Assembly: GCA_002269645.1 (NCBI GenBank)
Contig: NIVC01003315.1
Span: 1 to 47,434, forward strand
Origin: Macrostomum lignano
Lineage: Eukaryota
Length of the DNA stretch: 47,434 nt
Reading direction: 5' to 3'
Numbering within the stretch: the stretch's first letter is position 1; the number at the start of each line of letters is the position of its first letter. A model generated the notes under the pieces. That model saw only the letters and a list, made by a program, of their open reading frames with translations. It searched no databases and was not told the DNA's origin. The position numbers and the translations under genes were made by a program. Positions 1,082-42,004 of this stretch are shown here, piece by piece.

Positions 1082-1839
1082 TCATGTTGTACAGACGGAA
1101 CTGTCCACAAGAGATATTTCCACCTTCCCATCAGGTTCAGTGTTGCCTCCATCCGTTCCTGAGACTTGCTCAGCTGAAGCATCCGCGTAACTGGAGCCGC
1201 CGCCGCCGCCTGGACTGCCTTTCGCCCCTCCGGAGCCGCCGCAGTAGCCGCCACCGCCACCACCTCCGGCTTCATTTGCTCCAGCTCCAGCAGTTCGGCC
1301 TCCTCCGCCTCCACCGCCGTAGCCACCGGAACCGCCACTGGCACCGTCGCCTCCAGCCCAGGTGGTGCCTCCAAAGCCATTACTATCTCCAGCAGGTGAA
1401 GCCGCAGGTGACTGCCATCCAGCACCAGCAGCGCCACAGTTAGTACCCGACGGGTTGCTACCGGCGTTCTGATTGGCCGATCAGGGGCAAGAGCCATGCG
1501 AATGAATTCCAGCTTTGCCTGCAGTTGTCTCAGTGCCTCCGCCTCCTCCCCCGGCCGCCAACAGCAGGGTGCTGCTGCTCGTGTAGACAAAAGTTCCGCC
1601 TCCTCCACCGCCGCCATCGCCACTGCTTCCGCGTTTTCCAACAACAATGGTCAGCGTCTGAGAACTAGTCAAGGTAAAGTGAGCAATTTTTTCTGCTCCG
1701 TTGCCACCAGCGGCTGCTGTGCTTCCATCAAAAGCTGTACCGCCTTTGGCACCACGCGCTACAAATCGATAGCAGCCACCGTCCACAGGTGGTGTGTAGG
1801 TCACCGACGTTCCTAATTGGTATGACGCTGATGCTGGCA
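1082..1839 (-). pseudogene. ALK/LTK-like glycine-rich domain exon (diverged copy) with an internal in-frame TGA
   Basis: Acceptor ttttcag| at 1840/1839 (phase 1). Reads YTPPVDGGCYRFVARGAKGG...LTIVVGKRG..GGGGGGGTFVY..LLLAAGGGGGG, then TGA at 1481-1483. The same frame stays open for 132 more codons (GAAGAGW, GGYGGGGGGG, GGGGGSSYAD...GKVEISL) to TGA at 1082-1084. No upstream exon was located. Confidence 0.7.
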
Positions 1840-2232
1840 CTGAAAATGTTTGAGAAAATCAGATTCTAAATTATGTTATCATTTAATAAATAGTAAATAC
1901 CAACTTGAATTGTTAAACAGGCCTGTGCATGGAGAACATTGAGCCATTCATTGATAGCTAGAATCCATAGATAAAGCCAATCAAAGCCACTGTCACAGAG
2001 CTGCAGTCGGCCAAAGCCAATAAAGACAGTCCAGCTGATAAAAAGTCAATTAAGGACGTAACTCCATTAAAAATCAGCGAAATTTTAGAAACCAATTTTC
2101 TGTGGCCAGAATACTTGCTTTAAGATTATCCACTTTATTGTCTTTTAGCCAGAGAGAATTAAGCCTTTAACAGCCTGGCTTGGACTGTAGTCTGCGGGAG
2201 AGTGGCAGCTTAGAATTCCGAGCTGTCCGCTT

Positions 2233-9352: not shown

Positions 9353-10152
9353 TCATTTGCAGTAAGAGTTGGCGACGGCTGCAATGACGACCTTTCCAGC
9401 AGGACCGCTATTGTGCCCATTCGATCCCTCGGGGTTCCTGCCCGATGCGTCCACGAAGCTGCCGCCTCCGCCTCCTCCATCTCCGCTGCTGCTTCCAGTT
9501 CCGCCGCAACCACCGGAGTAGCCGCCGCCTCCGCCGCCGCCGCCTTCACTGTCACTACCGTCTGTGCCGCCGCCTCCGCCGCCTCCGCCGTAGCCACCAT
9601 CGCCGTTGCTGTTTGCGCCGCCTCCCGCCCAGCTTCCGGTGGCGCTCTTTCCTCCATAGCCTCCATCGTCGCCTGTGGGTCCGGAACCTCCAGCAGAGCC
9701 CCAACCAGCACCACTGCCGCCAGACCTGTCAGTGCCCTTGCTGGGACCTCCCTGTCCGACAGTCGAGCCGGAACAAGTGCTGCTAGTGCCATCGCTGCCG
9801 TCTTTTCCCGTGTCCGAGTTGGAGCCATCACCGCCTCCGCCGCCTCCTCCGGCAGCCAGAAGCAGCTGATCAGAGTTACTGCTTCTGGTTATATAGACAA
9901 AGGTTCCGCCTCCACCACCGCCGCCGCCATTAGAGTCGCCATCGCTTCCGGCATCGGTCCCAGACTTTCCCACGACAATCGTGAGCGTCTCAATCAGATT
10001 GAAATAGGCCATTTTGTAAGCTCCCTTGCCTCCAGTTGCACCTTTTGTTGACTGGCCACCGTTGGCGCCCCATGTTTCGATTTTGTAGCAGGTGTTCACT
10101 TCCGGTGGTGTGAAGAATTGCACTAATCCCGTTTTGCCAGTTGTGCCACTCG
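9353..10152 (-). CDS. Terminal exon: ALK/LTK-like glycine-rich domain (gene A, GRD2)
   Basis: Acceptor catttcag|CG at 10153/10152 (phase 1). Intact frame SGTTGKTG..FTPPEVNTCYKIETWGANGG..LTIVVGKSG..GGGGGGGGTFVY..LLLAAGGGGGGG..GKVVIAAVANSYCK*. Confidence 0.8.
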
Positions 10153-14119: not shown

Positions 14120-14946
14120 AGGTAAATGTCACCGGAATAGAGGCGTTGATTTCGCAATAGGAACTGGCGACGGCTGCAATGACGACCTTTCCAGCAGGAC
14201 CGCTGTTGTGCCCATTCGATCCCTCGGGTTCCTGCCCGATGCGTCCACGAAGCTGCCGCCTCCGCCTCCTTCATCTCCGCTGCTGCTTCCAGTTCCGCCG
14301 CAACCACCGGAGTAGCCGCCGCCTCCGCCGCCGCCGCCTTCACTGTCACTACCGTCTGTGCCGCCGCCTCCGCCGCCTCCGCCGTAGCCACCATCGCCGT
14401 TGCTGTTTGCGCCGCCTCCCGCCCAGCTTCCGGTGGCGCTCTTTCCTCCATAGCCTCCATCGTCGCCTGTGGGTCCGGAACCTCCAGCAGAGCCCCAACC
14501 AGCGCCACTGCCGCCAGACCTGTCAGTGCCCTTGCTGGGACCTCCCTGTCCGACAGTCGAGCCGGAACAAGTGCTGCTAGTGCCAGCGTTGCCGTCTTTT
14601 CCCGTGTCCGAGTTGGAGCCATCACCGCCTCCGCCGCCTCCTCCGGCAGCCAGAAGCAGCTGATCAGAGTTACTGCTTCTGGTTATATAGACAAAGGTTC
14701 CGCCTCCACCGCCGCCGCCGCCATTAGAGTCGCTATCGCTTCCGGCATCGGTCCCAGACTTTCCCACGACAATCGTGAGCGTCTCAATCAGATTGAAATA
14801 GGCCATTTTGTAAGCTCCTTTGCCTCCAGTTGCACCTTTTGTTGACTGGCCACCGTTGGCGCCCCACGCTTCGATTTTGTAGCAGGTGTTCACTTCCGGT
14901 GGTGTGAAGAATTGCACTAATCCCGTTTTGCCAGTTGTGCCATTCG
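14120..14946 (-). CDS. Internal exon: ALK/LTK-like glycine-rich domain (gene A, GRD1); 1-nt deletion at ~14226
   Basis: Near-identical to 9353-10152. Acceptor catttcag|CG at 14947/14946. AACCCGAG here versus AACCCCGAG in the twin. The corrected frame ends SYCEINASIPVTFT-T|GTAAGT (donor at 14119, phase 1). Confidence 0.7.
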
Positions 14947-16196: not shown

Positions 16197-17672
16197 CATT
16201 AAAGATGACCGACGACATAGCCGTCGTTTTTGTAGTCGTAGTGGTCATATTTTGAGTCGTGGTGGGGGTAGTCCAATTTGAAGCTGTAGTAGTCGAAGCC
16301 CCTGTGGTCGTAGTCGGAGCCTCTGTGGTCGTAGTCGGATCCCCTGTGGTCGTAGTCGGAGCCCCTGTGGTCGTAGTCGGAGCCTCTGTGGTCGTAGTCG
16401 GAGCTTCTGTGGTCGTAGTCGAGCCCCTGTGGTCGTAGTCGGAGCCCCTGTGGTCGTAGTCGGAGCCCCTGTGGTCGTAGTCGGAGCCCCTGTGGTCGTA
16501 GTCGGAGCCTGTGGTCGTAGTCGGAGCCCCTGTGGTCGTAGTCGGAGCCCCTGTGGTCGTAGTCGGAGCCCTGTGGTCGTAGTCGGAGCCCCTGTGGTCG
16601 TAGTCGGAGCCCCTGTGGTCGTAGTCGGAGCCCCTGTGGTCGTAGTCGGAGCCCCTGTGGTCGTAGTCGGAGCCCCTGTGGTCGTAGTCGGAGCCCCTGT
16701 GGTCGTAGTCGGAGCCCCTGTGGTCGTAGTCGGAGCCCCTGTGGTCGTAGTCGGAGCCCCTGTGGTCGTAGTCGGAGCCCTGTGGTCGTAGTCGGAGCCC
16801 CTGTGGTCGTAGTCGGAGCCCCTGTGGTCGTAGTCGGAGCCCCTGTGGTCGTAGTCGGAGCCCCTGTGGTCGTAGTCGGAGCCCCTGTGGTCGTAGTCGG
16901 AGCCCCTGTGGTCGTAGTCGGAGCCCTGTGGTCGTAGTCGGAGCCCCTGTGGTCGTAGTCGGAGCCTCTGTGGTCGTAGTCGGAGCCCTGTGGTCGTAGT
17001 CGGAGCCCCTGTGGTCGTAGTCGGAGCCCTGTGGTCGTAGTCGAGCCCTGTGTCGTAGTCGGAGCCCCTGTGTCGTAGTCGGAGCCCTGTGGTCGTAGTC
17101 GGAGCCCCTGTGGTCGTAGTCGGAGCCCCTGTGGTCGTAGTCGGAGCCCCTGTGGTCGTAGTCGGAGCCTCTGTGGTCGTAGTCGAAGCCCCTGTGGTCG
17201 TAGTCGGAGCCCCTGTGGTCGTAGTCGGAGCCTCTGTGGTCGTAGTCGGAGCCCCTGTGGTCGTAGTCGGAGCCTCGGTGGTCGTATCTGAAGTCGCAAT
17301 CGGAGTCATGGTGTTCGGAGCCGTAGTAGTCATCGAAGTAGACTCACAATCTGCTCTGGTTCGCAGCACCTGCGTGTTGCAGACCGGCCCGCTACTGAGC
17401 TGCCAGTAAAGCAGCAGGTCGCAGCTGTCTCCCAGAATGCATGACCGGTTGCTAGGCAAGTACTCATAGACTGAGCACAGGGCCGTGTTGCTCGCGCATT
17501 CGACAGCGCACACTCGAGCATCGGCAACACCGAGCACTGTGCGCTGACCGCTCGCAGCAGTCACAGCATTGTAGCACAGGTCCGGCCTCTTGTCGAAGAC
17601 AAAGGTAATCGTGGCTGTAAGTGAAATTAGAACTGCCAATATAATGGCAGTTCTGAAAAGACATGTAGACAT
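16197..17672 (-). CDS. Gene A exon 1: signal peptide + PAN/apple-like domain + (GAPTTTT)48 mucin stalk
   Basis: Hydrophobic leader MSTCLFRTAIILAVLISLTA; PAN-type Cys spacing CAVECASNTALCSVYEYLPSNRSCIL; Thr repeats; ends SSVIFN-G|GTAGGC (donor at 16196). Frameshifts are confined to G/C runs of the array. Confidence 0.75.
16289..17290 (-). repeat. Coding 21-bp tandem array, 48 units (GGGGCTCCGACTACGACCACA = GAPTTTT)
   Basis: Unit starts were counted at a 21-bp period. Ten units are short, by 13 nt in total. Confidence 0.95.
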
Positions 17673-21228: not shown

Positions 21229-24200
21229 TTAATTAGTCAGCCTGTCAATGAGCTGCCGCAGCACGATGTTGCGCGTCCTGCCGCTCGAAGCTCGCACCTT
21301 GACGCCCTCTGCAATCTGCGCATGACTCAGAGCCACGCAGACCTGGCCATGTTGATAGCAGGCCATCGCCAGGTCAACGGCGTAGGTGCTCAGCGTCTGG
21401 CCTTGGCTATGGTGGATGGTCATGGCGAAACACAATCGGATCGGGAACTGCAGGCGGCGGAAGGTGAAGGGCAGCTCGGTTGGACCCGACTCCTGTTGGA
21501 TCCGCGGGATAAAAACCTGCCGCCCGTGGTAGCTGACGCCCGTGGCGACCTCCGAAAGCAGTACGTTGTCCCGCAGTTCGCGAAGCAGCAGCCGGGTCTC
21601 GTGGCACATCAGCGGAGGGTCCAGATTCCTCGTCATCATGACCGGCATGCCGACCTTCAGCTCTAACCGGTGATGTGGCAGGCCGTTGGAGTCCAACCGG
21701 TTCAGCAGCTCCGGTAGGGAAGTTGCTCGCTGCCCCATCGTCGTGCGGAAATTGAGTCGACCGACAGGTAGACCCGACTCTCACCGGGAAGCAGCGCCAA
21801 GCAGGTGACGTTGGCTTCGTCCAGGGTCTTGTTGAGCGGTCTTATCTTGCTCCGCGTACATCTGGTTGGTTCAAACGATGGTTAGACGTGCCGGATGAGC
21901 TACTAGTTGTGTCCTCAGGCTTGAAAATAAATTCAACATTCAGCGTTCAAGCTCAAGTTTTTCGATAGATCTTGGTTAATTCTAAAATAAGGTTGTAGTG
22001 TGCGTACGCACGGTATCTTAGCCCAAAGTGTACGCCCGGGCGGTCTGATTGGCTGCAGAGCGGGGTGGGTGCCGCCACCCCAATTCTAGCTCTAAATATA
22101 TAGATGTGTGCCCAGCGCGGCGAGAGTGTAAGAGTTTCGACTACACCGCAAACACGGCCTCTGTCTCAGTTACTACAAGGGTTAAAGGAAATTCACCTGA
22201 TCTGGCTCAACACGTGGCTCAGGCAGTCCGTAGGCAAGCAGCTCAGTTCCTCCCATGGTGTCCAGCAGTGTCTACAGCTCTCGCTAAACCTCCAACTCGG
22301 CAGCCTCTGGGCTATAGCCTTAGTCTAGCAGATCAACTCGCCGGAGAACTTCTGCCACAGCTTTGCAGGGTCGCTGGGGCCGCCTGCATGGCGACACAAA
22401 ATGGCAGCGAAAAGGCGGCGCAGAGCCGCTGGCAACCGCGTCTCCGTGGCTTCGCACAGGCAAAGTCACCATGGTGCCTGTCGTCTTCCAGCAGTCCACG
22501 AGTCTGGCAGGCGGCAGCAGTCCTCTGAAGGTCGGCAGCAGGACGCCATCAACGGTGCGCAACGCCTCGAATGACGTCGGGCCTCGAACATTCACCAGCA
22601 GCAGGCGCAGGCAGAAACTGTCTCCCGTCCGAGGGCTAACTGTGTAGACGCGGCCGTTGTTGCCAGTCGTCAGCACGCCAGCTGGCTGATCGGCAGTCTC
22701 TCGGCTGTGCCTCGCGCGATGCCACTGGTGCGCCCTGTTGTCTCAGGTGAAGTTCCGGGGTACCTCCTGGTACAGCAGGTCTCGCGCAACTGCATCCTGG
22801 TCGTCCTTCAGGCTGATGAAGGGCCAGTCTGATGACAGCCGGATACCGACTGTTCATGTGCACTTAAAAGCCCAAGATGGTGCTGACCACCTCCATGGGA
22901 CTAAAGTACCCGCCCAGAAGGTGCTGCCTGACTTGCGCTTCGCTGGCGCCGCCTTGGTCTGAGCTGACTGATGGGGCTGCTGATCGCCACTTTCCTGAAG
23001 AGCCGCCGCGTCGCTAGCCGTAGTAGCATGGCTGTCGGCCTTCGCATCAGCAGCAGCAGCTAGCTCCTTCCGGACTTGGAATTCGCTGCCCTTAAATATA
23101 AGGGTACCGACGTAGTTTAACGCCTTGACTGTCGCACAGATCTAGACGTTCAGGTGAGACCTAAACTCGTGCAGCAGCACAGGGCAGTAAGCACGACCTA
23201 GCGCGGTTTGCCTTCTGACCGCCGCGCAGCTTTGCGACCTTGGCCACCGAGAAGCCGCTTATCTAAGTTAATATGCGATGATAGTGCGGGTAGCCGTCCT
23301 CTTGAATCATGGTGACTGCCTAGAACTCTCTCGGATAGCGCTTGCTACATGCGCCATTCTCCATGCACGACGCGTCTGGATTCAGCTGCATTACACAGGG
23401 ACCATGTGTTGTATTTTCTGCTTCCGTCCGTGCGGACCGCAGACGGGCTGATCAGGGGTTCGGGTACTGGACTGCCCAGAGCTTGCCAGGTGGGATAGGC
23501 GAGAGAGTGGCGACCCCCGAGGCGTACGAACACTTCGAGGTGGAGGTGGAGAGGCTGGGAGCGTACAGACACTCGGCCAGCCCCACGGAGAGAGGGAGAC
23601 GCAGATGAGGAGGCTGTGAGCAGGTAGCCACTCAGCAGCAACAGCAGAGGTGAGCACGGGTCTGGAGGCGTACAGACACTTCGCAGACCCGAAGGAAGAC
23701 GGTGGCGAGAGAGGTAAATAATGAAGGCGGGACAAATTAACGAAAGCGAACGCTGTCTTACCGGGCGGGGTCACTTGTCGCGCTGATGCAGGCGTGGCCT
23801 CTAATATCTCAGCCTCAGTTGACTGTATTTCAATTTCAAGCTTCACTTTCACTCAAACACGTGTAGAGCTAGAGTTGTAGAGAGAGAGCAGGGAGGGCGA
23901 GAGCCGGGCGAGGGCCGCGCGCGCACATAAATACTGGGTGAGCACTGAGCAGGGGACTGGGGAGGGCTTAGCCACGCAGGGCTGGGGGTGGGGGCAAAAC
24001 TCACAGAGTTGAAGGGCGAGAGGGAAGGCTAGCCAATCAGGTGCCTCCGCGGCGAGACACATGATTGGACTAGCCCACGCGAGAGAGAGAGATGAAAATA
24101 CGCCAGCCAATGAAAATGTGGGCTGATGAAAGTGAGAACAAAAAATGAATAGCAGCTTTAGACGGAGGGGGCAAGCCAGAAAAAACCAGTGGCAGGGAGA

Positions 24201-26678: not shown

Positions 26679-26944
26679 CCTGTTACCGACCTCCAGCTCA
26701 TTTCTGAGATAATCAGCGCCAAAAAGTGTTTAGCCAATGATAAACACTACAAGTAATGGCCTTGAGCCTGCCAATTTAGTGCTACAATGAGATATTTAAC
26801 ATTCTTCCAATGCAATATCCCTCGAAAACTATGGGTTTTGATTGGATTTTGGTTCGATGTTTTAGTTGGCTGTTCGATTTCACAATGCTTCCTTATCTTA
26901 GAGCAATTTATTCATTGATGTCCAGCGTTTAACTCCTTAACTTC

Positions 26945-27738
26945 TTAGTTGCAGTTGGCACGAGCGACGGCTGCAATGACGACCTTTCCAGGAGGACCGC
27001 TGTTGTGCCCGTTCGATCCCTCGGAGTTCCTACCCGATGCGTCCACGAAGCTGCCGCCTCCGCCTCCTCCAACGCCGCTGCTGCCTGATCCGCCGCAACC
27101 ACCGGAGTAGCCGCCGCCTCCGCCGCCGGCGCCTCCGCCGCTACCGTCTGTGCCGCCGCCTCCGCCGCCTCCGCCGTAGCCACCATCGCCTTTGCCGTCT
27201 GCGTCGCCTCCCGTCCAGCTTCCGGTGGCGCTCTGTCCTCCATAGCCTCCATTGTTGCCTGTGGGTCCGGAATCTCCAGCAGAGCCCCAGCCAGCTCCAC
27301 TGCCGCCAGACCTGTCAGTGCCCTTGCTGGTACCTCCCTGTCCGACAGTCGAGCCGGAACAAGTGCTGCTAGTGCCATCGCTGCCGTCTTTTCCCGAGTA
27401 CGAGCTGGAGCCATCACCGCCTCCACCGCCTCCTCCGGCAGCCATAAGCAGCTGATGCGAGTTACTGCTTCTGGTTATATAGACAAAGGTTCCGCCTCCA
27501 CCGCCGCCGCCGCCGTTATTGCTGTGATCACTTCCTGAGTTGGTCCCAGACTTTCCAACGACAATCTTGAGCGTCTCGGTCAGATTGAAATAGGCCATTT
27601 TGTAAGCTCCTTTGCCTCCAGTTGCACCTTTTGTTGACTGGCCACCGTTGGCGCCCCACGCTTCGATTTTGTAGCAGGTGTTCACTTCCGGTGGTTTGAA
27701 GGATTGCACTGATCCCGTCTTTCCAGTTGTGCCACTCG
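26945..27738 (-). CDS. Gene B exon 2: ALK/LTK-like glycine-rich domain
   Basis: Acceptor cacttcag|CG at 27739/27738 (phase 1). Intact frame SGTTGKTGSVQSFKPPEVNTCYKIEAWGANGG...GKVVIAAVARANCN*. Confidence 0.85.
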
Positions 27739-29067
27739 CTGAAGTGCGTTTGATAAGGGATGAGCGCTCAATTGAAATCCATTACGTGTACATTCTAGAA
27801 GTCGCTAAATGTACTCTAACACTTCGCGGAAAATGTATTTACAATCTGAGCATTAAAAGTATATTTAGCCTGCGAATGGCTGCTGGATGTGCTGCTTGTT
27901 CATTACTGACAAGACAATGTCTTGTCGATTTGAGTGACAGAGATCGATTTCGCTTGTTGGTCATTTGCAGCCCTTATGGTTTGGTTTTCTCACTAAGTTT
28001 CCTCACAGAACCTGTCGAAGCACTCAAATTTCTCAAAGCGCAACTAATCATATTCTCAACCTGCAGGTGACCTTGGATTCCACAGTCATATCGAGGCTTC
28101 TAGACAGGGTGACAGCTACTGCTGACAAATTACCAATGACTTTTCTTTTTTTGAGCAGTAATGATGGGGAGCCAGGAGAAAAGAACGATGTTTCAGGGGT
28201 TGCTGCACCGGGTGTCAATGCGATCAAAGTCTCTGAACTTGCCGGAGTATCCTGTTTCAGCAAATAAATGAACAGAAAACAATGTAAAATTTTGCACTCA
28301 AGGTAAATAATCAAGCGGAAGGAACAGAATATGAAGATGGGAAGATTTGGGCTGATCCCAGAGAATTCCTGTGGTACAAAACAGATCTATTGAAGCTTTT
28401 AAGCGTCTAAGAAACTCATAAACATGTACCGGGTATGCAGGCTCTGATCGATCCTATACAACTCATGATGACCCATCAATAAGCACGTGTGGACTTGAAA
28501 CTTATATACATATGTTTGCAATAATATGTAAGAATCGTCTCCTAGAAAGAGTGCAAAGGTGACAGAGAAAAACATAATTAACAAGTCTTATATATTACTT
28601 TAAGAAATAGCTCCCAAATCAGAGAGAAAAATGACAAAAATTAACTGCCAGTAGTCAATACTGCACTTAGGCCAATATGCGAATGTAGAATTTGAAAAAA
28701 ATTTGCATCATCATGATCGGTTCTTTCTTTAACTCCCTGGTCCCTGATTCATACATGCGCCGGCATTTCGACAGATGAAATTCCTCTAGGGAGAGACTAT
28801 ACGCTCGTACTATTCCATAGGTAGAAGAGGATATGATGTACAATATTATTATACATGTACAGCCAGTAAGGCATAAATGATGTACTTCGTTTCATTTATG
28901 CTTTTATCAGCTTTGACTCCACTAAGAGAGAAAAAGTAGTGGCGTAAATAAATGTGTGCATATAAATTTTCTACACGCCGATTGCTTGAAAAATATATAC
29001 CAAGATTTCTCAACGCCTATTATATAGCATTAATTATACAAACAGAAACATTAAAAATTCCGCCTAC

Positions 29068-29494
29068 CATTAAAGACGACCATCGGCGTTGCAGTAGTTG
29101 AGGTCGTAGTCGAAGTCGTAATCGGAGTCGTAGTGGTCGGAGCCGTAGTAGTCATCGAAGTAGTCTCACAATCTGCTCTGGTTCGCAGCACCTGCGTGTT
29201 GCAGGCCGGCCCGGTGCTGAGCTGCCAGTAAAGCAGCAGGTCGCAGCTGTCTCCCAGAATGCATGACCAGTTGCTAGGCAAGTACTCATAGACTGAGCAC
29301 AGGGTCGTGTTGCTCGCGCATTCGACAGCGCACACTCGAGCATCAGTAACCCTGAGCACCTTGCGCTGACCGCTCGCATCAGTCGCAGCATTGTAGCACA
29401 GGTCCGGCCTCTTGTCGAAGACAAAAGTCAGTGGAGATGTAAGTGAACCCAGAACTGCCAGTATAATGGCAATTCTGAGAATACTTGTAGACAT
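29068..29494 (-). CDS. Gene B exon 1: signal peptide + PAN/apple-like domain + short Thr stalk
   Basis: MSTSILRIAIILAVLGSLTS leader, the same Cys pattern as gene A, TTT-rich linker, and end MVVFN-G|GTAGGC (phase 1, donor at 29067). Confidence 0.85.
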
Positions 29495-32400
29495 TAACTA
29501 TAATTCCAGCTGTAAAAGCAATTGCTGCAGATAAAAGCCGTCTTAGTTAACGGAGGTGTGCAGAGGAGCGCGCTGATGCAGCAACTTTATAGCCATTTCA
29601 AGTTGCCAATTGTGCGCTTCACCCACCCCACAATGTCTCAAGCTCGCAGTAGCTACGGAGTAAACATGTTTAGTTACCAAGGTAACTGAGTTTAAATGCT
29701 ATACCTGACTTCTATAGCCTCAAAATCGAGTGCTAATGCATTCATGAGGTTAGGGCAGAAGTCGCTGGGAAGTCAAAGAGGCATGTCTCTACGCTCGTGT
29801 GCACATTCTTGCATTGACAATCGGCTTCTTCTTCTAGTCCCCCCCTAGCTGCTGGCGCTGCAGCACCTCTTTTCGCTGCCGGTAAAATTGCATACTTGAC
29901 TGCGCTGGGTCAAATCCCACACTAAGAAGTTTTATTCTATCTGCTTTTTGTCAGTTTTTCTGCGAGGTGGAAGCTTAATAGCTGTTGTGTTAGAGAGCAA
30001 TATTGTTCTCACTTCCTCACTTTCCCTAGCAATCGACAGTCTCTAGAGATACTGCAGGGCTTGTTTGACTTTTTCTCCTGATACATTCCGTGTACATGTA
30101 AGAGCCAAGAGCTTCTATATTAGCCTATGCATATAGCTACATGTGTATACGGATGCATCGCATAGTATTGCGTGCACGTAAAGAGGACCACCCCCGGCCA
30201 ACAAATCGCCCCCGCAAAAATGCACCGTCTCCATTTTAACTTCTGAAAAACTACATGTAAGTGAAAAGAACATGTCAACCAAACTTGACGAACGACGCAG
30301 TAGCTCAACTTTTGCCGCTCTTTGCATTGAACGTTTGCCTGCATGGGGATCATTGCCGGGGGCACGCATATCCCCCACTAATTCTACTATAGCCCCTGTC
30401 CACAAAGACAATTAGACATCAAATATCAATTGGCATTCCATTAGCTTAGGATTGCGTCACTATAGCTTTTCAATTAATATTTCTGTGCGTCAGTGCCACT
30501 ATAATTTACTAAACTCTTTTTTAATAGCTTTGCAATAAATTTTTAATAGCGGCTCAAATCTTCCATATAACAAAATCTGAATAATAATGCTAATTTTGAA
30601 CCCAACAATACGCAACTCGTTTAGGAAAATGTTTAGAAATACAGTACATAGTAGCAAACAATAATAAACAAAGTAACATGTACATGTAAAATAATTGGTT
30701 ATATCCGCTATTAATTTTTTTCAGATTTATGATGCTGTCCAAGAGGACTTGGTATTCTCACGTACCAAATTGTTCACAGTAAGCAATTTCCCGCTAAGCT
30801 GTTATATTAAATTATTATGTACGAGAATAAATGTAACAATAAATAACATATTTCACTCTAACAAAAATTTTAATTTGAGTTGAGCTATTAACATCTTCTA
30901 TCGTTATTATACCACTTAAGTTAAAATTTTTTACTTAAAATTAAAAGTATAGTTAAGCCCCTAAATTATGAGGTAAAAAGTTATGCTTCGAAAAATCAAA
31001 ATGCTTCTGGAATTCTCAAATTCTGGAATCAAAATTGATAAAATATAACAGCCACAGTTTTGGCGTCATTTTAAACAACAAAAATTGTTGAGGCGTGCAC
31101 GCATGATGCAGCGTACGCACGACCCGCCGCGGCGTGCATGTCGCCGGCTAATGCACAGCGCAGCTGCAAGCGAGCTGTTCATGAACTCGACATTTAATGA
31201 AAGGACCCTCGACATGTTTGTGAGGTCTTACGAAAAGCAAAAACAAAAACAAACAGATAAATGTCTGACTCTAAGAACGGACTGTTTGTAGAATAGAATG
31301 TAGAGCTGAATCTTTATTCTTTATCTTTACTATAGTATATAGTAGGCCGATGACTATGTAGCATTAACAGCATATAAAGCGAGAATTAGGGTGGCAGTTT
31401 TGCATAGATCTTTTCAAGAGTCAAGACTTCCGAAGGTTATAGAGGTATAAACCCTACCTCTACAGGGTACTTTAAGTTTAAAGTCATTTAATAATACTAT
31501 AAGTAACTGGGGCTATGGCCTATTGATTTAGTAAATTTATAATATAGACTATGTCTATAGATATTGTACAACATAAGTATGATAGGTCATAAGCATATTC
31601 TATATAATTTTTCTTATTATTGCCTATGCAGTAGGCCCCCTATTACATATTGAAAGCATTTAATTTTTTAGAATGTTGGCCTAACTGGCTAAATTGCTTG
31701 AATTTTTTAAACTTGGACATAGCCTTAGATTAGGCCTATGCAATAGGCCTAGCCCTAGGCTTGAATTTCATCCTATTTAACTTTCAATATATTATATTAT
31801 ATCATATATTATAGAGTATAGTAAAGTAAATAGGATATAATATCATATTCTTATTTTTAATTTTATATAAAGTATATAGCTAGCTAACCTAAGTTAACAT
31901 ATAGATTTGTCTTGCATTTAAAGTAAAATTTTAATAAGTATAAATCATTATCAGGCATAGTTCTAGTTTACTTCATTATATTATTTCATAATTCTACTTT
32001 ACTTTGTTATATTAATTTCATGTATTTTCTTGCATCTGTACTCTTACCACAACCCTTTGAGCAATGCACTTTTCAAGGCCCATCTCGAGAAGTATATCTG
32101 GCGCGGCATGTACCATAATAACCCCTTTGGCGCCATGCTGTACTGGGCCTTTGTTTATTATCCTATTTAGGACTTGACTTGACCTTGAACCTGAAATTGA
32201 TAGAAGAAATAATTTAACAAAAGGCAGAATAATATAATGAAGTAAACTAGAACTATGCCCATTATCAAATTAAACTTATTCATTTGCTTATTAATAGTGT
32301 AGGACCTAGGTTTTGTGCTAAATTTCCACTTTCTAGGTTGTTAGTTGCCAATATAGCACATTTTTGGAATACAATTTCAGATCTTGCAAACATGTAGCAT

Positions 32401-34456: not shown

Positions 34457-37400
34457 ATGCCATTGCCAATTGGACGATTCTCTTTGACCAACGTTGCCCG
34501 ACTTTATCAACTACCGAGGCTACTGCAAGTGCAGCACAATCTCAGAGCGGCAATGTCCTCCTCACCTGGATACCTAATTAATGAGCCTAAGTATGCTTGG
34601 CTGAAAGATCTTGGACTAGAGGTTAGTAATCAATATTTAAGTACACTGTGTACTGAATTGTTGGTATTATTAAGCTTGAAATTTATGTTTTTATGGTAAC
34701 TTAGAGGGCCAACCCTTAAGGCACAGAGGGTGTGCATGCCTGATGATTTGGAAATTCAGTATTGTCGCAATTAGTGACGCAAAGTCATTAACAATGGTCT
34801 CAGCAAGTGTAGAACCCTCTGCAAACAATAACTTGTGCACTCCATATTCGCAGGAAGTCAACAAAGGAGTGTACAGCGGTGGCGCCTGGAGCGGCAGCGG
34901 CAATCGGATTGACTCCATCTGTCCGGCTAATGGTAGAAAAATTGCCTCAGTAGTTGAAGGCACCCCGGAAGATTATAACAAACTGATTGAGGCGGCCCGT
35001 GCCGCTTGGCCAGCCTGGGCGGAGACCACGCCACCGGCTAGGGGAGAGATTGTTCGCCAGATTGGCGACAATCTGCGCAAAAATCTGCAACTACTTGGCA
35101 AGCTGGTGTCGCTTGAAATGGGAAAAATTCTGCCCGAAGGGGTGGGCGAAGTGCAGGAAGTTGTTGACATTTGCGATTACGGTGTTGGATTGTCCAGGAC
35201 GTTGAGCGGCCAGGTGAGGACCTTCTGAGAACCTAGTAGAGATCTGAGGACCCAGTAGGGATCTGATGACCTAGTAGGGATCTGATGACCTAGTAGAGAT
35301 CTGAGGACTTAGTAGGGATCTGATGACCTAGTAGGGATCTGAGGACTTAGTAGGGATCTGAGGACTTAGTAGGGATCTGAGGACCTTGTGGGGTCCCGAG
35401 GACCTAGTAGGGATTTGAGGACCTAGTAGGGATCTGAGGACCTAGTAGGGATCTGAGGACCTAGTAGGGATCTGAGGACTTAGTAGGGATCTGATGACCT
35501 AGTAGGGATCTGATGACCTAGTAGGGATCTGAGGACCTAGTAGGGATCTGAGGACCTAGTAGGGATCTGATGACCTAGTAGGGATCTGATGACCTAGTAG
35601 GGTCCTAAGGACCTAGTGGGGTCCTGACCTGAGGATCTGGTGGGGTTCTGAGGACCTAGTAGGGTCCTGAGGACCTAGTGGGGTCCTGACCTGACAATCT
35701 GGTGGGCTTCTGAGGACCTAGTAGGGATCTGGACCTAGTGGGGTCCTGAGGGCCTAGTAGGGATCAGGGACCTAGTGGGGTCCTGAGGACCTAGTGGGGT
35801 CTTGAGGACCTAGTAGGGATCTGAGGACCTAGTAGGGTCCTGACGACCTAGTGGGGTCCTGACCTGACAATCTGGTGGGGTTCTGAGGACCTAGTGAGGT
35901 TCTGAGGACCTAGTAGGGATCAGGGACCTAGTGGGGTCCTGAGGACCTAGTGGGGTCCTGACCTGACAATCTGGTGGGGTTCTGAGGACCTAGTAGGGTC
36001 CTGAGGACCTAGTAAGGATCTGAGGACCTAGTGGGGTGGGGTCCTGACCTGAGGATCTGGTGGGGTTCTGAGGACCTAGTAGGGATCTGAGGACCTAGTG
36101 GGGTCCTGAGGACCTAGTGGGGTCCTGACCTGAGAACCTAGTGGAGTCCTGAGGACCTGGCAGGGTTCTAAAAACCAACTGACCACCTGGGGATGTTTCG
36201 GGTTCAGTAGAGTGCTAAATGAATGATCAGATAGGAACTGTAATTAATTATTATTCTACAGTAATGTCTTAGATAGAGTAGGAGTAATATGAATCAGTTA
36301 AAACTTTAATGCATCATATCGTTCTTGCAGGCAGATTAATACTAGATGGTCAGTTGGTTTCGTTGAATTTTAAAACATACCACAAAGCAAAAGAACATTT
36401 CAAGGTGGTTACCTAGCAAATCTGTGTGGGTCAGATGGGTGTATCTTCAGACTGCTGTACAGTGGGTGTGGTCTTTCACCCGAGTTTGTGTATAGCAGCA
36501 AGCGTGGAAAGAAACTCGCTTTTCTTTCCGGTAGAAAATTTCTCTTACCCCACAGTTCTAGCGGTTGTGTCCAGGGCGGTTGAATACCGAGCGTACACTG
36601 CAGGCCCTGGGGTTTTCAGTGACGAATACCCGAAAGAAGGTTGATAAGCCATCTGAAAACGAATTAAAGTACTCGTTGGTAGTCTAAACAGTTTACGCAA
36701 CAAACTACTCTTATCATTTATCAGTAGTATGCTGTGATTAAATTTTGAGTTTTTGTGCAGAACTAATTAGGTGACGAGGCGTTAAAGCATTTACTCCCGT
36801 CCCGCCTTTAACGACTAGTAATCAGTGTACTAATTAGATGACGAGGCGGTGCCAAAGTCATGTTTACTCCCGCCTTTTACCCACTAAAAGAGCACAATAA
36901 ATGCATTAAATTTTACCAGGTGCTACCATCCGAGCGGCCCAATCACTCTCTAATGGAAGTGTGGAATCCACTGGGCGTCATCGGAGTCATCACCGCTTTC
37001 AACTTTCCCTGCGCCGTGTTTGGCTGGAACTTCAGCCTGTCAGCCGTGTGCGGCAATTGCACAGTGTGGAAGGGCGCCCCCAGCACGCCGCTGACTACCC
37101 TGGCTGTCACCAGAGTTGTAGCCGAAGTGTTCGAACGGAATGGCGTCCCGCCCGGCGTCCTGTCGGCCATCTGCGCCGGGGCCGACGTTGGAGCCGCGAT
37201 GGCGGCTGACGAGCGACTGCCACTGGTGTCCTTCACCGGCAGCTGCGCCGTGGGGCGCGAGGTCAGGCTGCGCGGGGTTAAGGATGCCAAACTGGGGGGG
37301 GGGTCAGGGTGCCAAACTCGGAAGGTCAAGAGTACCAAACTTACAGAGGGGGGGTCTCAAATGCCAAACTCGATGGAGTCAACGGTGTCAAACGTAAGGG

Positions 37401-38251
37401 GAGGTCAAGGGTGCCAAACTCGGGGGAGTGGTCAGGCAAACTTTAGAGGGGTGCAATGCAAAACTTCAAGGGGGTCAGGGTGCCAAACTTCAGGGGAGGT
37501 CAAGGGTGCCAAACTTTAGGGGAGGTCAAGGGTGCCAAACTTCAGGGGAGGTCAAGGGTGCCAAACTTTAGGGGAGGTCAAGGGTGCCAAACTTCAGAGG
37601 TCAAGGGTGCCAAACTTCAGGGGAGGTCAAGGGTGCCAAACTTCAGAGGTCAAGGGTGCCAAACTTCAGAGGTCAAGGGTGCCAAACTTCAGAGGTCAAG
37701 GGTGCCAAACTTCAGGGGAGGTCAAGGGTGCCAAACTTCAGAGGTCAAGGGTGCCAAACTTCAGAGGTCAAGGGTGCCAAACTTCAGGGGAGGTCAAGGG
37801 TGCCAAACTTTAGGGGAGGTCAAGGGTGCCAAACTTCAGGGGAGGTCAAGGGTGCCAAACTGTACCTAAACTGGTTCAGCTGTGCCAATTTTTTCTCATT
37901 AAATATGGCCAGATTGCTAATAATGCGCCCCTCAGGTTGCGGTGACTGTGGCTGGCAGATTCGGCCGCATTCTGCTCGAGCTGGGCGGCAACAATGCCAT
38001 CCTGGTGAACGCCGATGCGGATCTGGACATGGTTGTGCAGTCAGCCGTCTTCGCCTGCGCCGGCACCGCCGGTCAGCGCTGCACCTCAACCAGGCGGCTG
38101 GTGCTACACAGCTCCGTGCACGATCAGGTCGTGTCCCGGCTGGGCAAGGCGCTGGAGTCGCTCATGGCCAAGGCTGGCGATCCTGTTGAACAGGGCGTGC
38201 TGTACGGCCCGCTACACTCGCCTGCCTCCGTGGAAAAGTGAGTTCTGTCTG

Positions 38252-38284
<33 letters not shown>

Positions 38285-38377
38285 CAGTGTCTGTCTGTCT
38301 GTCTGCCTTTCTGTCTGTCTGTCTGTCTGCCTTTCTGTCTGTCTGTCTTTCTGTCTGTCTGTCTGTCCGTCTGGCTT

Positions 38378-38408
<31 letters not shown>

Positions 38409-40013
38409 CAGTGTCTGTCTGTCTGTCTGCCTGTCTCAGTGTCTGTCTGTCTGTCTGTCTGTCTCAGTGTCTGTCTGTCTGTCTGTCAGGGTGTCTGTCT
38501 CTCTGTCCATCAGCCCATATCTACCACCGCGCACCAGATACGAGTCGGCAGTGGCCCGGGCCCAGGCGGAGGGCGGCCAGATCGTGTTCGGCGGCAAGCG
38601 AATCTCTCGTCTGTCCAGCAGCGGCGGCTACTTCGTCGAGCCGACCCTGATCACCGGGCTGAAGCCGGACTCGCCGCTGGTGCAAGAGGAGACTTTCGCT
38701 CCGATTGTGTACGCGCTCAAGTGCGACTCGCTTGACGAGGCTATTCGGATTAATAATTCGGTAAATTTTTTGTTTACCATCTGCGCTTATTTACTATGGA
38801 CTACTGATTTCACTGGTAGAATTTGATAGACTCAAATCTCAAGTGGAAATAGTTAGAGATTAATTGGGATGCAGTGAGGTGAATGCACATTAGAAAGTGA
38901 GAATATTAGAACAGGAAGTTTAATTTGGTCGAGTGAGATTGGAAGAGAATGAGATTGGTAGGGAGTGAGATTGGTAGTGTGAGATGGGTAGAGTGAGAAT
39001 ATACGAGGTAGAGTGTGAGATTGGTGGAGAGTGTGATTTTGGTAGAGAGTGTGATTTTGGTAGAGAGTGTGATTTTGGTAGACTGAGATTGGTAGAGTAT
39101 GAGATTATAGTAGAGTGTGAGATTAGTAGAGTGTGAGATTAGTGGAGTGTGAGATTGGTACAGTGAGATTGGTGGAGTGTGAGATTGGTAGAGAGTGAGA
39201 TTGGTACAGTGAGATTGGTAGAGAGTGAGATTGGTAAGGAGGAGATTGGTTGAGTGAGATTGGTAGAGTGAGATTGGTTGAGTGAGATTGGTAGAGAGTG
39301 AGATTGGTTGTGTGAGATTGGTAGAGTGAGATTGGTTGAGTGAGATTGGTTGAGTGAGATTGGTTGAGTGAGATTGGTTGAGTGAGATTGGTTGAGAGAG
39401 ATTGGTTGAGTGAGATTGGTTGAGTGAGATTAGTAGAGTGAGATTGGTTGAGTGAGATTGGTAGAGAGTGAGATTGGTTGAGTGAGATTAGTAGAGTGAG
39501 ATTGGTTGAGTGAGATTGGTTGAGTGAGATTGGTTGAGTGAGATTAGTAGAGTGAGATTGGTTGAGTGAGATTGGTTGAGTGAGATTGGTTGAGTGAGAT
39601 TAGTAGAGTGAGATTGGTTGAGTGAGATTGGTAGAGAGTGAGATTGGTTGAGTGAGATTGGTTGAGTAAGATTGTTTGAGTGAGATTGGTAGAGTGAGAT
39701 TACCAGTAGCAGATCTCCAGCCTCAGCCGCTAAACTCCCTCAGGTGAAGCAGGGCCTGTCATCCAGTTTATTCACCCGGGACCTCAGCAACCTGTTCCGC
39801 TGGATCGGGCCTCGCGGCTCCGACTGCGGCCTCGTCAACGTCAATATACCGACGTCTGGCGCCGAGATTGGCGGCGCTTTCGGCGGCGAGAAGCACACTG
39901 GCGGAGGCCGGGAGTCTGGCAGCGACGCGTGGAAGCAGTACATGCGACGGAGCACCTGCACTATCAACTATGGCAAGGACCTGCCGCTGGCTCAGGGCAT
40001 CAAGTTTGAGTAG
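34457..40013 (+). CDS. ALDH7A1: Aldehyde dehydrogenase 7A1 (antiquitin, alpha-aminoadipic semialdehyde dehydrogenase), 6 exons, 553 aa
   Basis: Exons 34457-34621, 34854-35213, 36920-37261, 37936-38237, 38538-38760 and 39744-40013; all GT-AG, phases consistent, 1662 nt. Motifs [105 protein letters not shown]. Confidence 0.97.
35214..36170 (+). repeat. ~19-bp minisatellite in ALDH7A1 intron 2
   Basis: GAGGACCTAGTAGGGATCT and variants. Confidence 0.95.
37270..37862 (+). repeat. 23/26-bp minisatellite in ALDH7A1 intron 3
   Basis: GGGTGCCAAACTTCAG(GGG)AGGTCAA units. Confidence 0.95.
38244..38505 (+). repeat. (TCTG)n microsatellite in ALDH7A1 intron 4
   Basis: Visible tetranucleotide run. Confidence 0.95.
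38930..39702 (+). repeat. 14/16-bp minisatellite in ALDH7A1 intron 5
   Basis: GAGTGAGATTGGTT / GAGTGAGATTGGTAGA units. Confidence 0.95.
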
Positions 40014-40497: not shown

Positions 40498-41029
40498 ATA
40501 ATCTAATCCAATCTGATATATCCAATATGAACAAAAATAGTTCTTCCCATTATTTCGTGTATTAATTATGAACAATTGTCCGGTCAATCATAATGCCATG
40601 TTTATCACACCATTGTCATTCGCTTCCCTGCATCGGTGATCGAAATCAATTATTTATTATTTTCTCCATAAAACTAATTTTTCAATTTCATTTTTTCTAC
40701 AAGCATCGCATGTTATGCATTATCTAACCTTTAGCTTACTACTTTGAATTTAGCTAATTAGTAGTATGTAGACTAACCGATAGCTAATTCACAATATTTT
40801 CATAAGCACGAGCGGTTGTTATTTTCGCAAATTATTTTATATGGTTCTGTATGCCAATAAGAAACGTATATCATTTTGAGTAATATATTTCTACCAATAC
40901 TGATAATAAAGTTGAACTCATTCTTGCATGCTTTTCTGCTCAGTTAAAAAGCAAACTGCAATTCCGCGTTGTCTTCATTTCTATCGGTTCGCTTCGTTTA
41001 GTTGTCACGAAAGATTTGTGAGGCCCGCT

Positions 41030-41830
41030 TGCCCTCTTCCCTTCCCCTCTTCCCTTCCTCTCTTCCCTTCCCCTCTTCTCTTCCCCTCTTCCCTTCCCCT
41101 CTTCTCTTGCCCTCTTCTCTTCCTCTCTTCTCTTCCCCTCTTCCCTTCCCCTCTTCTCTTGCCACCTCTTCCCCTCTTCTCTTCCCCTCTTCTCTTCCCC
41201 TCTTCTCTTGCCCTCTTCTCTTCCCCTCTTCCCTTCCCCTCTTCCCTTCCCCTCTTCCCTTCCCCTCTTCTCTTCCCCTCTTCCCTTCCCCTCTTCTCTT
41301 GCCCTCTTCTCTTCCTCTCTTCTCTTCCCCTCTTCCCTTCCCCTCTTCTCTTGCCACCTCTTCCCCTCTTCCCTTCCCCTCTTCTCTTGCCCTCTTCTCT
41401 TGCCCTCTTCTCTTCCCCTCTTCTCTTCCCCTCTTCTCTTGCCCTCTTCTCTTCCCCTCTTCTCTTCCCCTCTTCTCTTGCCCTCTTCTCTTCCCCTCTT
41501 CTCTTGCCCTCTTCTCTTCCTCTCTTCTCTTCCCCTCTTCCCTTCCCCTCTTCTCTTGCCCTCTTCCCTTCCCCTCTTCTCTTGCCCTCTTCTCTTCCTC
41601 TCTTCTCTTCCCCTCTTCTCTTGCCCTCTACTCTTGCCCTCTTCTCTTCCCCTCTTTCTTCTCTTCCCCTCTTTCTTCTCTTCCCCTCTTTCTTCTCTTC
41701 CCCTCTTTCTTCTCTTCCCCTCTTCTCTTCCCCCTCTCTTCCCCTCTTCTCTTGCCCCCTTCTCTTGCCATCTTCTATTCCCCTCTTCTCTTGCCCTCTA
41801 CTCTTGCCCTCTTCTCTTGCCCTCTTCTTC
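41030..41830. repeat. ~800-bp polypyrimidine/polypurine tract
   Basis: Almost only C/T on the plus strand (CTCTTCCC, CTCTTGCC variants). Confidence 0.95.
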
Positions 41831-42004
41831 CCCAAGTATTCATCAAATGCGCAACTTAACCGAAATATCTGGGGTCCGTTTTCAATCTGTCTTCCCCTTA
41901 CCTACTGCAGACTAATTTTACTGAAAATAGGCAGTTCTTGAAGACCCAGTTTTTCTGTAGTTAAAATGCAACACTTCTTTAATTTCTCTTTCAAGACTTT
42001 GGAA

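Follow-up and report, generated by a model that had tools for sequence, protein, structure and literature searches.

A probable two-exon gene of Macrostomum lignano encoding a predicted secreted protein with PAN/Apple-like and glycine-rich domains

We analyzed a 47,434-nucleotide (nt) stretch of DNA from Macrostomum lignano (contig NIVC01003315.1 of assembly GCA_002269645.1, positions 1 to 47,434; hereafter the window), in which the locus at 29494 to 26945 is designated gene B. Read and translated on the minus strand, gene B appears to be a real, intact nuclear protein-coding gene, one member of a tandem, lineage-specific family of secreted proteins that combine a PAN/Apple module with a glycine-rich domain (GRD), and we consider this reading likely. 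Two related minus-strand loci, genes A and C, lie in the same window, and all positions given below are window coordinates.

Gene B begins with an ATG at 29494-29492, and an in-frame TAG (29500-29498) lies 6 nt 5' of this codon. Exon 1 (29068..29494; 427 nt) encodes a signal peptide, a PAN/Apple-like module, a stalk, and the first β-strand of the GRD, and it ends with the first base of codon 143. The intron (27739..29067; 1329 nt) is in phase 1 and runs GTAGGC...cacttcag, with the donor AATG|GTAGGC (GT at 29067-29066) and the acceptor cacttcag|CG (AG at 27740-27739). Exon 2 (26945..27738; 794 nt) supplies the body of the GRD, residues 143 to 406, and closes with a TAA stop at 26947-26945. The spliced coding sequence of 1221 nt specifies 406 amino acids (aa) and reads VVFN-A-SGTTGK across the junction; the predicted mRNA has the junction sequence ...GTCGTCTTTAATG^CGAGTGGCACAACTGG, which is the same junction as ...TCTTTAATG^CGAGTGGCAC... 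Every coordinate that the original prediction had given for an intact two-exon gene was recovered, including the sum of 427 and 794 nt and both splice sites, which were confirmed by reading the minus strand; its intron lengths (1329 nt in gene B and 1250 nt in gene A) were correct, and the stop at which it had ended an unspliced exon 1, placed at 29051, was found at 29053-29051, giving a read-through product of 147 aa.

The gene is bracketed by motifs that, as read from the sequence, may serve its expression: a TATAAA box (29586..29591, minus strand), 92-97 nt 5' of the ATG, is a candidate promoter element and falls within the ~250-nt 5' flank (29744-29495) that shares ~80% identity with the flank of gene A, while an AATAAA (26907..26912, minus strand), 33 nt 3' of the stop, is a putative polyadenylation signal. 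Stand-alone expression of the GRD exon was rejected: its frame is open for only 15 codons 5' of SGTTGK, and exon 2 has neither an ATG before M190 nor a signal peptide, so that it cannot be expressed alone.

The open frame is weak evidence for the splice junction when taken alone, because 12 different GT-AG combinations keep the gene B frame open. By our reading, it is the comparative evidence as a whole that singles out 29068/27738 among these 12. The spliced product reads PMVVFN|A|SGTTGKTGSVQSF, and the alignment places this motif against a contiguous counterpart in intron-less bacterial homologues: GAVTFNASGTGRNGTTQTF in P0009 (shorter excerpt GAVTFNASGTGRNG), TVVTFNASGSGRSGGLQRW in P0048 (shorter excerpt TVVTFNASGSGRSG), IMVFNNTSSGMTGTILEW in P0014 (shorter excerpt IMVFNNTSSGMTG), SQTFNANGSGPTGSIQTF in P0022, and VWTFTNSSTGRTGSVQKW in P0087. 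The VVFN-A-SGTTGKTG of gene B thus faces a bacterial TFNASGTGRNG, and both the FNASG and the VxFN motifs are uninterrupted in the bacterial homologues. The BLASTP alignment of gene B with P0014 begins at M138 and spans the junction, and AlphaFold places the strand encoded by exon 1 (residues 138-142) within the confidently predicted GRD.

Introns elsewhere in the family agree with this position. When the annotated M. lignano paralogues PAA61162 and PAA57358 were mapped onto their loci in GCA_002269645.1, each had a phase 1 intron at the position found in gene B; the junction of Mlig019850 is ...AVYEN^D (G|GTGAGA...tcag|AC), and that of Mlig028980 is ...MLYSNY^S^ASG (T|GTGAGC...gcag|CG). Within the window, genes A and B both have TTTAATG|GTAGGC at the donor and TTCAG|CGA at the acceptor, and the similarity between the two genes drops within ~10-17 nt of entering the intron. 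The acceptor is conserved across three GRD exons, and similarity again falls off upstream of it. Finally, gene A has an internal GRD exon whose tail encodes ...PVTFT, which a phase 1 splice joins to SGTTGK, providing a first strand for the second GRD of that gene.

Residues 138 to 406, 34% of which are glycine, form the GRD, in which the penultimate residue, Cys405, is conserved. A phmmer search of the PDB returned chains of ALK and LTK as the only significant matches (E 4e-4 to 1e-2), with an alignment that covers the N-terminal β part as well as the glycine-rich part of the domain. The Pfam profile ALK_LTK_GRD (PF12810) matched exon 2 alone at E 1.3e-4 and 22.4 bits, below its curated cut-off of 24.5, and scored 10.5 bits in the full-length protein; the closest relatives, P0242-P0244, scored 84-113 bits, and many of the matches from a word-indexed homologue search carry PF12810. 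Structure prediction, which had been proposed as a check on the original prediction, bore out the domain: using a 63-sequence alignment, AlphaFold modelled residues 138-406 with a mean pLDDT of ~90, whereas a single-sequence run of the whole protein (mean pLDDT 41) was uninformative. The top 21 Foldseek matches of this model in the PDB were all TG/GRD structures of ALK or LTK (E 1.2e-12 to 4e-6, with target-normalised TM-scores of up to 0.69), the sole fold family matched. For the C-terminal 269 residues, the predicted fold resembles that of the TNF-like/polyglycine (TG) supradomain found in ALK/LTK.

The likeness to ALK and LTK (PDB 7nx1, 7lrz, 7mzy, and 7lir) extends to predicted fold (target-normalised TM-score 0.65-0.69) and motif order, including the poly-Gly runs and the succession GGYGGGGGG...GGGGGYSGG, but amounts to just 23-25% sequence identity, with a score of 23 bits against human ALK. 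Further, gene B has none of the EGF, MAM, or LDLa modules of these receptors, and no ALKAL-type ligand is known or implied for it. The TAA stop falls 8 residues past the last strand of the GRD (aa 394-399), and neither a transmembrane segment nor a kinase domain was detected in the protein, the Pfam scan giving no kinase match. Because the stop directly follows the GRD and because both membrane anchor and kinase are lacking, gene B is not an ALK-family receptor.

The N-terminal half of the protein is less sharply defined. A signal peptide is predicted at residues 1 to ~20, with a helix at 4-16, and this hydrophobic N-terminal helix suggests that the protein is secreted. The PAN/Apple-like module occupies residues ~24-112 (29425-29159); against a cut-off of 21.4 bits, the score for PAN_1 (PF00024) was 22.0 bits with this segment alone (24.2 with the corresponding segment of gene A) and 17.8 within the full-length protein, and the profile matches three of the five family members. 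A profile built from the five members had as its best match in the PDB the N-terminal PAN domain of plasminogen (E 0.09), while a two-sequence PAN profile gave just a chance match to lysozyme. The cysteines fit the module: six of them (C33, C55, C59, C66, C78, and C98) occur in every member of the five-member alignment (A5), and C109 in all four sequences of the alignment of gene B with three paralogues (A4), in keeping with the PAN core of four to six cysteines around C-x3-C...C...C. Over residues 20-133, where the alignment is too shallow, pLDDT was 30-46 in both AlphaFold runs. An assignment to PAN/Apple is plausible but marginal.

A stalk follows at residues 110-137 (29167-29084), recognized by its composition, in which 20 of the 28 residues are Thr or Ser and three are Pro. 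The strand MVVFN (aa 138-142; 29083-29069), defined by AlphaFold and by the motif alignment, completes exon 1; the intron sits five codons into the GRD, so that exon 1 encodes the first β-strand of that domain. The protein may be N-glycosylated at its four sequons, including N142-A-S, which arises through splicing, and heavy O-glycosylation of the Thr-rich, mucin-like stalk would be expected from its composition.

The fusion of a PAN module to a GRD is not confined to this locus. When the full protein was the query, poly-Gly words dominated the word-indexed search; its matches were confined to GRD proteins from bacteria and metagenomes, and it missed all of the Macrostomum relatives, which were found by an exhaustive search and cluster look-ups. 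Gene B can be aligned over its full length, at 40-44% identity, with three "Apple domain-containing proteins" of M. lignano: P0251 (PAA61162.1/PAA91998.1; Mlig019850; A0A267H149), P0253, and P0255 (PAA57358.1; Mlig028980; A0A267E764). BLASTP gave no alignment of gene B with P0253, presumably through composition filtering, but MAFFT aligned the pair well. Like gene B, PAA61162.1/PAA91998.1, PAA57358.1, and A0A1I8IMG2 have a signal peptide, a Cys-rich PAN-like module, and one GRD with the terminal conserved Cys, and the paralogues have a phase 1 intron just inside the GRD; they differ from gene B in lacking a Thr-rich stalk, their PAN and GRD being linked by 15-25 ordinary residues, and one has an extra intron inside the PAN module. 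With domain order and intron position shared in this way, the paralogues uphold the earlier proposal that gene B supports a PAN-GRD fusion, and, together with the junction motif and the modelled GRD, the proposed succession of signal peptide, PAN, Thr linker, and single GRD, in which PAN is the marginal element. An additional M. lignano protein, the "WSC domain-containing protein" P0258 (UniProt A0A1I8I814), also carries a GRD, and the GRD has therefore been paired in this species with more than one type of putative glycan-binding head. Our literature search found no paper on the M. lignano Apple/GRD proteins, and nothing on their expression or function. Two models of an older annotation, P0246 and P0388, are mergers of a PAN+GRD gene with IFT140 or with pyruvate kinase.

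Gene B itself is represented in public records by a fragment. The 157-aa M. lignano entry A0A1I8J935 (UniProt; P0241) is identical to gene B over exon 2 residues 143-277, its N-terminus corresponds to the gene B stalk with two substitutions, and it most likely derives from gene B or from an allele. This identity points to M. lignano, or a very close relative, as the source of the window, in agreement with the animal matches, flatworms among the best of them, of an Aurora-kinase-like exon described below. It departs from our model in three respects: (i) its donor is at 29081, (ii) its stalk is read in the +1 frame (GSDHYDSDYD...), and (iii) it lacks both the PAN module and the C-terminal half. 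The entry was automatically named "receptor protein-tyrosine kinase"; the gene B locus has no kinase, and the name is wrong. The same automatic name has been given in UniProt to other kinase-less GRD proteins of M. lignano.

Self-comparison, and family profiles run on the six-frame translation, located two PAN exons in the window, that of gene B at 29494 and that of gene A at 17672, and four GRD exons, belonging to gene B, to gene A (14946-14120 and 10152-9353), and to a diverged copy at 1858-1085. Exon 1 of gene A (16197..17672, minus strand) encodes a signal peptide, a PAN module, and a repeat stalk, the last made of 48 copies of a 21-nt repeat (16289-17286) that encodes APTTTTG. Its internal GRD exon (14120..14946, minus strand; 827 nt, or 828 nt if a C-run near 14232 regains one base) is in phase 1 at both ends, and closes with ...IPVTFT at the donor ACCT|GTAAGT; in the minus-strand reading of 14120-14160, this exon ends ...CEINASIPVTFT, followed by GTAAGT. 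The tail constitutes the first strand of the next GRD, suggesting that the duplicable unit is a GRD body plus the following first strand, carried in a phase 1-1 exon. The terminal GRD exon (9353..10152, minus strand) has the acceptor TTTCAG|CG and ends in a TGA at 9355-9353. With its 48 x 21-nt stalk and two GRD exons, gene A substantiates the earlier statement that the family varies in stalk length and in GRD number.

The reading frame of gene A shifts at every G-run that lacks a base, GGGG appearing as GGG in the 21-nt repeat, and all of the frame breaks that we examined lie in homopolymer runs, including a CCCC that appears as CCC at ~14232 in the first GRD exon. Breaks confined to homopolymer runs are a pattern typical of long-read assembly errors. 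The frameshifts may thus be errors of assembly, and gene A intact in the animal. Intron 2 of gene A (14119-10153) also holds a 425-aa open reading frame (ORF) on the plus strand (12632-13909) that resembles a retroelement protease/integrase by eye, but had no Pfam match at E<=0.001.

The third and more diverged copy, gene C (1085..1858, minus strand; 50% protein identity), has an in-frame TGA at 1483-1481, and the profiles found no PAN exon for it upstream anywhere in the window. It probably represents a pseudogene, or else a family member that begins with another first exon. Just upstream of its GRD exon is a tandem repeat of 49 nt (2231-2564; 6.8 copies, 97% identity) that has stops in all frames.

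Conservation between genes A and B is concentrated in the exons. The coding sequences are 91-92% identical and differ by indels of 3 nt only, whereas the 5' and 3' flanks share ~80% identity and contain many indels. The introns are near background, except for four collinear patches of 30-160 nt with 66-80% identity (local score z=9.7; global z=3.6). The original prediction had described the gene B intron as homologous to the 1250-bp intron of gene A; this holds for the four short patches, but not for the introns throughout.

Beyond Macrostomum, the closest relatives of gene B are GRD surface proteins of bacteria and archaea (PF12810/PF21722), at 39-48% identity and with scores of up to 199 bits for multi-GRD proteins, which places them far closer to gene B than human ALK. 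The bacterial domains share the N-terminal motif TFNASGxGxxG...QxWTVP...YxIEAWGA. Unlike gene B, the proteins are intron-less, possess sorting signals and Ig-like repeats, and have no PAN module or mucin stalk; T9SS, PEP-CTERM, PKD, and HYR are the contexts in which the bacterial and archaeal domains occur.

Given these matches, and the mere 23 bits obtained with human ALK, the glycine-rich part might be taken for bacterial contamination or a mis-assembly. We regard this explanation as refuted, and its probability as negligible: a spliceosomal intron splits the GRD, the arrangement recurs, both in the four GRD exons of the window and at three or more further annotated loci of M. lignano, and the contig carries intron-containing metazoan genes for aldehyde dehydrogenase and Aurora kinase. 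Contamination was thus rejected on the intron and on gene context. Another explanation is that gene B is a young duplicate, silent or decaying, whose frame is open merely because there has been too little time for it to break. Comparison of genes B and A gives a ratio of nonsynonymous to synonymous divergence (dN/dS) of 0.6-0.8 at a dS of just ~0.1, which could reflect weak constraint, or else recent duplication with gene conversion; in addition, two neighboring copies carry frameshifts or a stop codon, and the PAN exon of gene B is absent from all public protein sets. We nevertheless hold decay to be unlikely, as the 1221-nt frame is intact despite its slippage-prone GGC runs, the indels relative to gene A are all multiples of 3, the exons are ~10 percentage points more conserved than the flanks, and the gene has a TATA box, splice sites, and an AATAAA, while the defects of gene A lie in homopolymer runs and may be assembly errors.

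A somewhat more remote alternative still is that gene B is expressed, but that its main mRNA uses another splice pair, with the donor at 29081 or 29170. The twelve open GT-AG pairs leave room for this, and the N-terminus of A0A1I8J935 is reproduced, bar its two substitutions, by joining 29081 (GATG|GTCGTC), 13 nt upstream of 29068, to 27738, with the stalk in the +1 frame. Used with the PAN exon, this donor would yield a PAN-stalk-only protein of ~157 aa. However, GTCGTC is a poor donor, without the purine expected at +3 or the G expected at +5, and the junction puts the stalk out of the PAN frame and removes the conserved VxFN first strand of the GRD; we read the model as a gene-prediction artefact on a truncated contig. 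The donor at 29170 (GATT|GTGAGA) is a good one, to which a GTGAGT corresponds at the equivalent place in gene A, and would skip the stalk to give a stalk-less PAN-GRD protein of 372 aa, but its use deletes both Cys109, invariant in alignment A4, and the first strand. Neither donor matches the intron position of the annotated paralogues, though a minor stalk-skipping isoform may arise from 29170.

Several observations count against our reading of gene B as an intact member of a secreted PAN-GRD family. The dN/dS ratio is one, and the state of the neighbors, both of which are damaged as assembled (frameshifts in gene A, a stop codon in gene C), is another; the PAN module is recognized at scores on either side of the cut-off, a PDB match of E 0.09, and low pLDDT; and the only public model of gene B uses the 29081 donor. 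Further, the signal peptide and PAN segment alone, encoded by the PAN exon of genes A and B, had no match in a word-indexed collection of 5.8 billion proteins, and an exact look-up found neither the 406-aa product nor the 147-aa read-through product among protein records. With the PAN exon unmatched and the full product unrecorded, existing annotations have not captured the gene B model. Lastly, the extracellular role set out next is one that we purely infer. Weighing these points with the junction evidence, the paralogues, and the conserved exons, we still favor the intact two-exon gene spliced at 29068/27738.

If so, the product could be secreted, heavily glycosylated, and active outside the cell as a two-headed binder, in which a stiff, mucin-like stalk keeps the PAN/Apple head apart from a rigid GRD head. 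PAN/Apple modules bind glycans or proteins, and the GRD of ALK/LTK binds a protein ligand. Such a protein might cross-link or tether its partners, whether in mucus, in matrix, in an adhesive or reproductive secretion, or on microbes. Diversity in the family could come from two sources: (i) changes in the number of 21-nt repeats, altering the stalk, and (ii) symmetric phase 1-1 exon duplication, altering the number of GRDs. The intron splits off the first strand of the GRD, and it is for this reason that duplication of a phase 1-1 exon can add domains.

As to origin, we suggest only tentatively, and with more doubt than conviction, that the PAN-GRD (and WSC-GRD) family has its source not in the animal ALK receptor, but either in a bacterial GRD surface-protein gene gained by horizontal transfer, or in a free-standing GRD ancestral to the ligand-binding region of ALK, of which it would be a relic. 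Under horizontal transfer, the bacterial gene would subsequently have had its domain split by a spliceosomal intron, would have gained a signal peptide, eukaryotic glycan-binding heads, and a mucin-type stalk, and would have expanded in tandem. To our knowledge, the TG/glycine-rich fold has been studied almost solely in the ligand-binding region of human ALK/LTK. Were either origin true, gene B would offer a small, secreted, and experimentally tractable animal GRD.

Public databases already contain the PAN-GRD family in the form of uncharacterised predictions, along with a mis-framed fragment of gene B itself. What is new here is a corrected, full-length, stalk-bearing member, a result of annotation rather than a new kind of system; it corrects a public entry that is both mis-framed and misnamed, and draws attention to the merged models of the older annotation. 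In situ hybridisation, RNA interference (RNAi), and transgenesis are established in M. lignano, a laboratory model, and these tools make the site of expression and the function of gene B directly testable.

The remainder of the window contains unrelated features; Rfam and tRNA scans of it were empty. An ORF at 21229-21738 (minus strand) encodes a Pif1 helicase 2B domain (E 9e-13), and probably belongs to a fragmentary Helitron-type or Pif1-like element. An aldehyde dehydrogenase gene (Pfam Aldedh) has its exons at 34743-39000 on the plus strand, with introns dense in tandem repeats: 47 copies of a 19-nt unit (35224-36122), 24 of a 26-nt unit (37276-37861), 66 of TCTG (38244-38507), and 52 of a 14-nt unit (38925-39701). 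A first coding exon resembling that of Aurora kinase lies at 41966-42490 (plus strand); no protein in the 5.8-billion collection, the M. lignano proteome included, exceeded 69% identity to it, with flatworms among the top matches, which looks like a gap in annotation. It is preceded on its 5' side by 63 copies of the 13-nt repeat CTTCCCCTCTTCT (41028-41828), which is strongly strand-skewed (GC skew ~-0.6), and is followed by an array of 35/140-nt repeats at 42484-43791.

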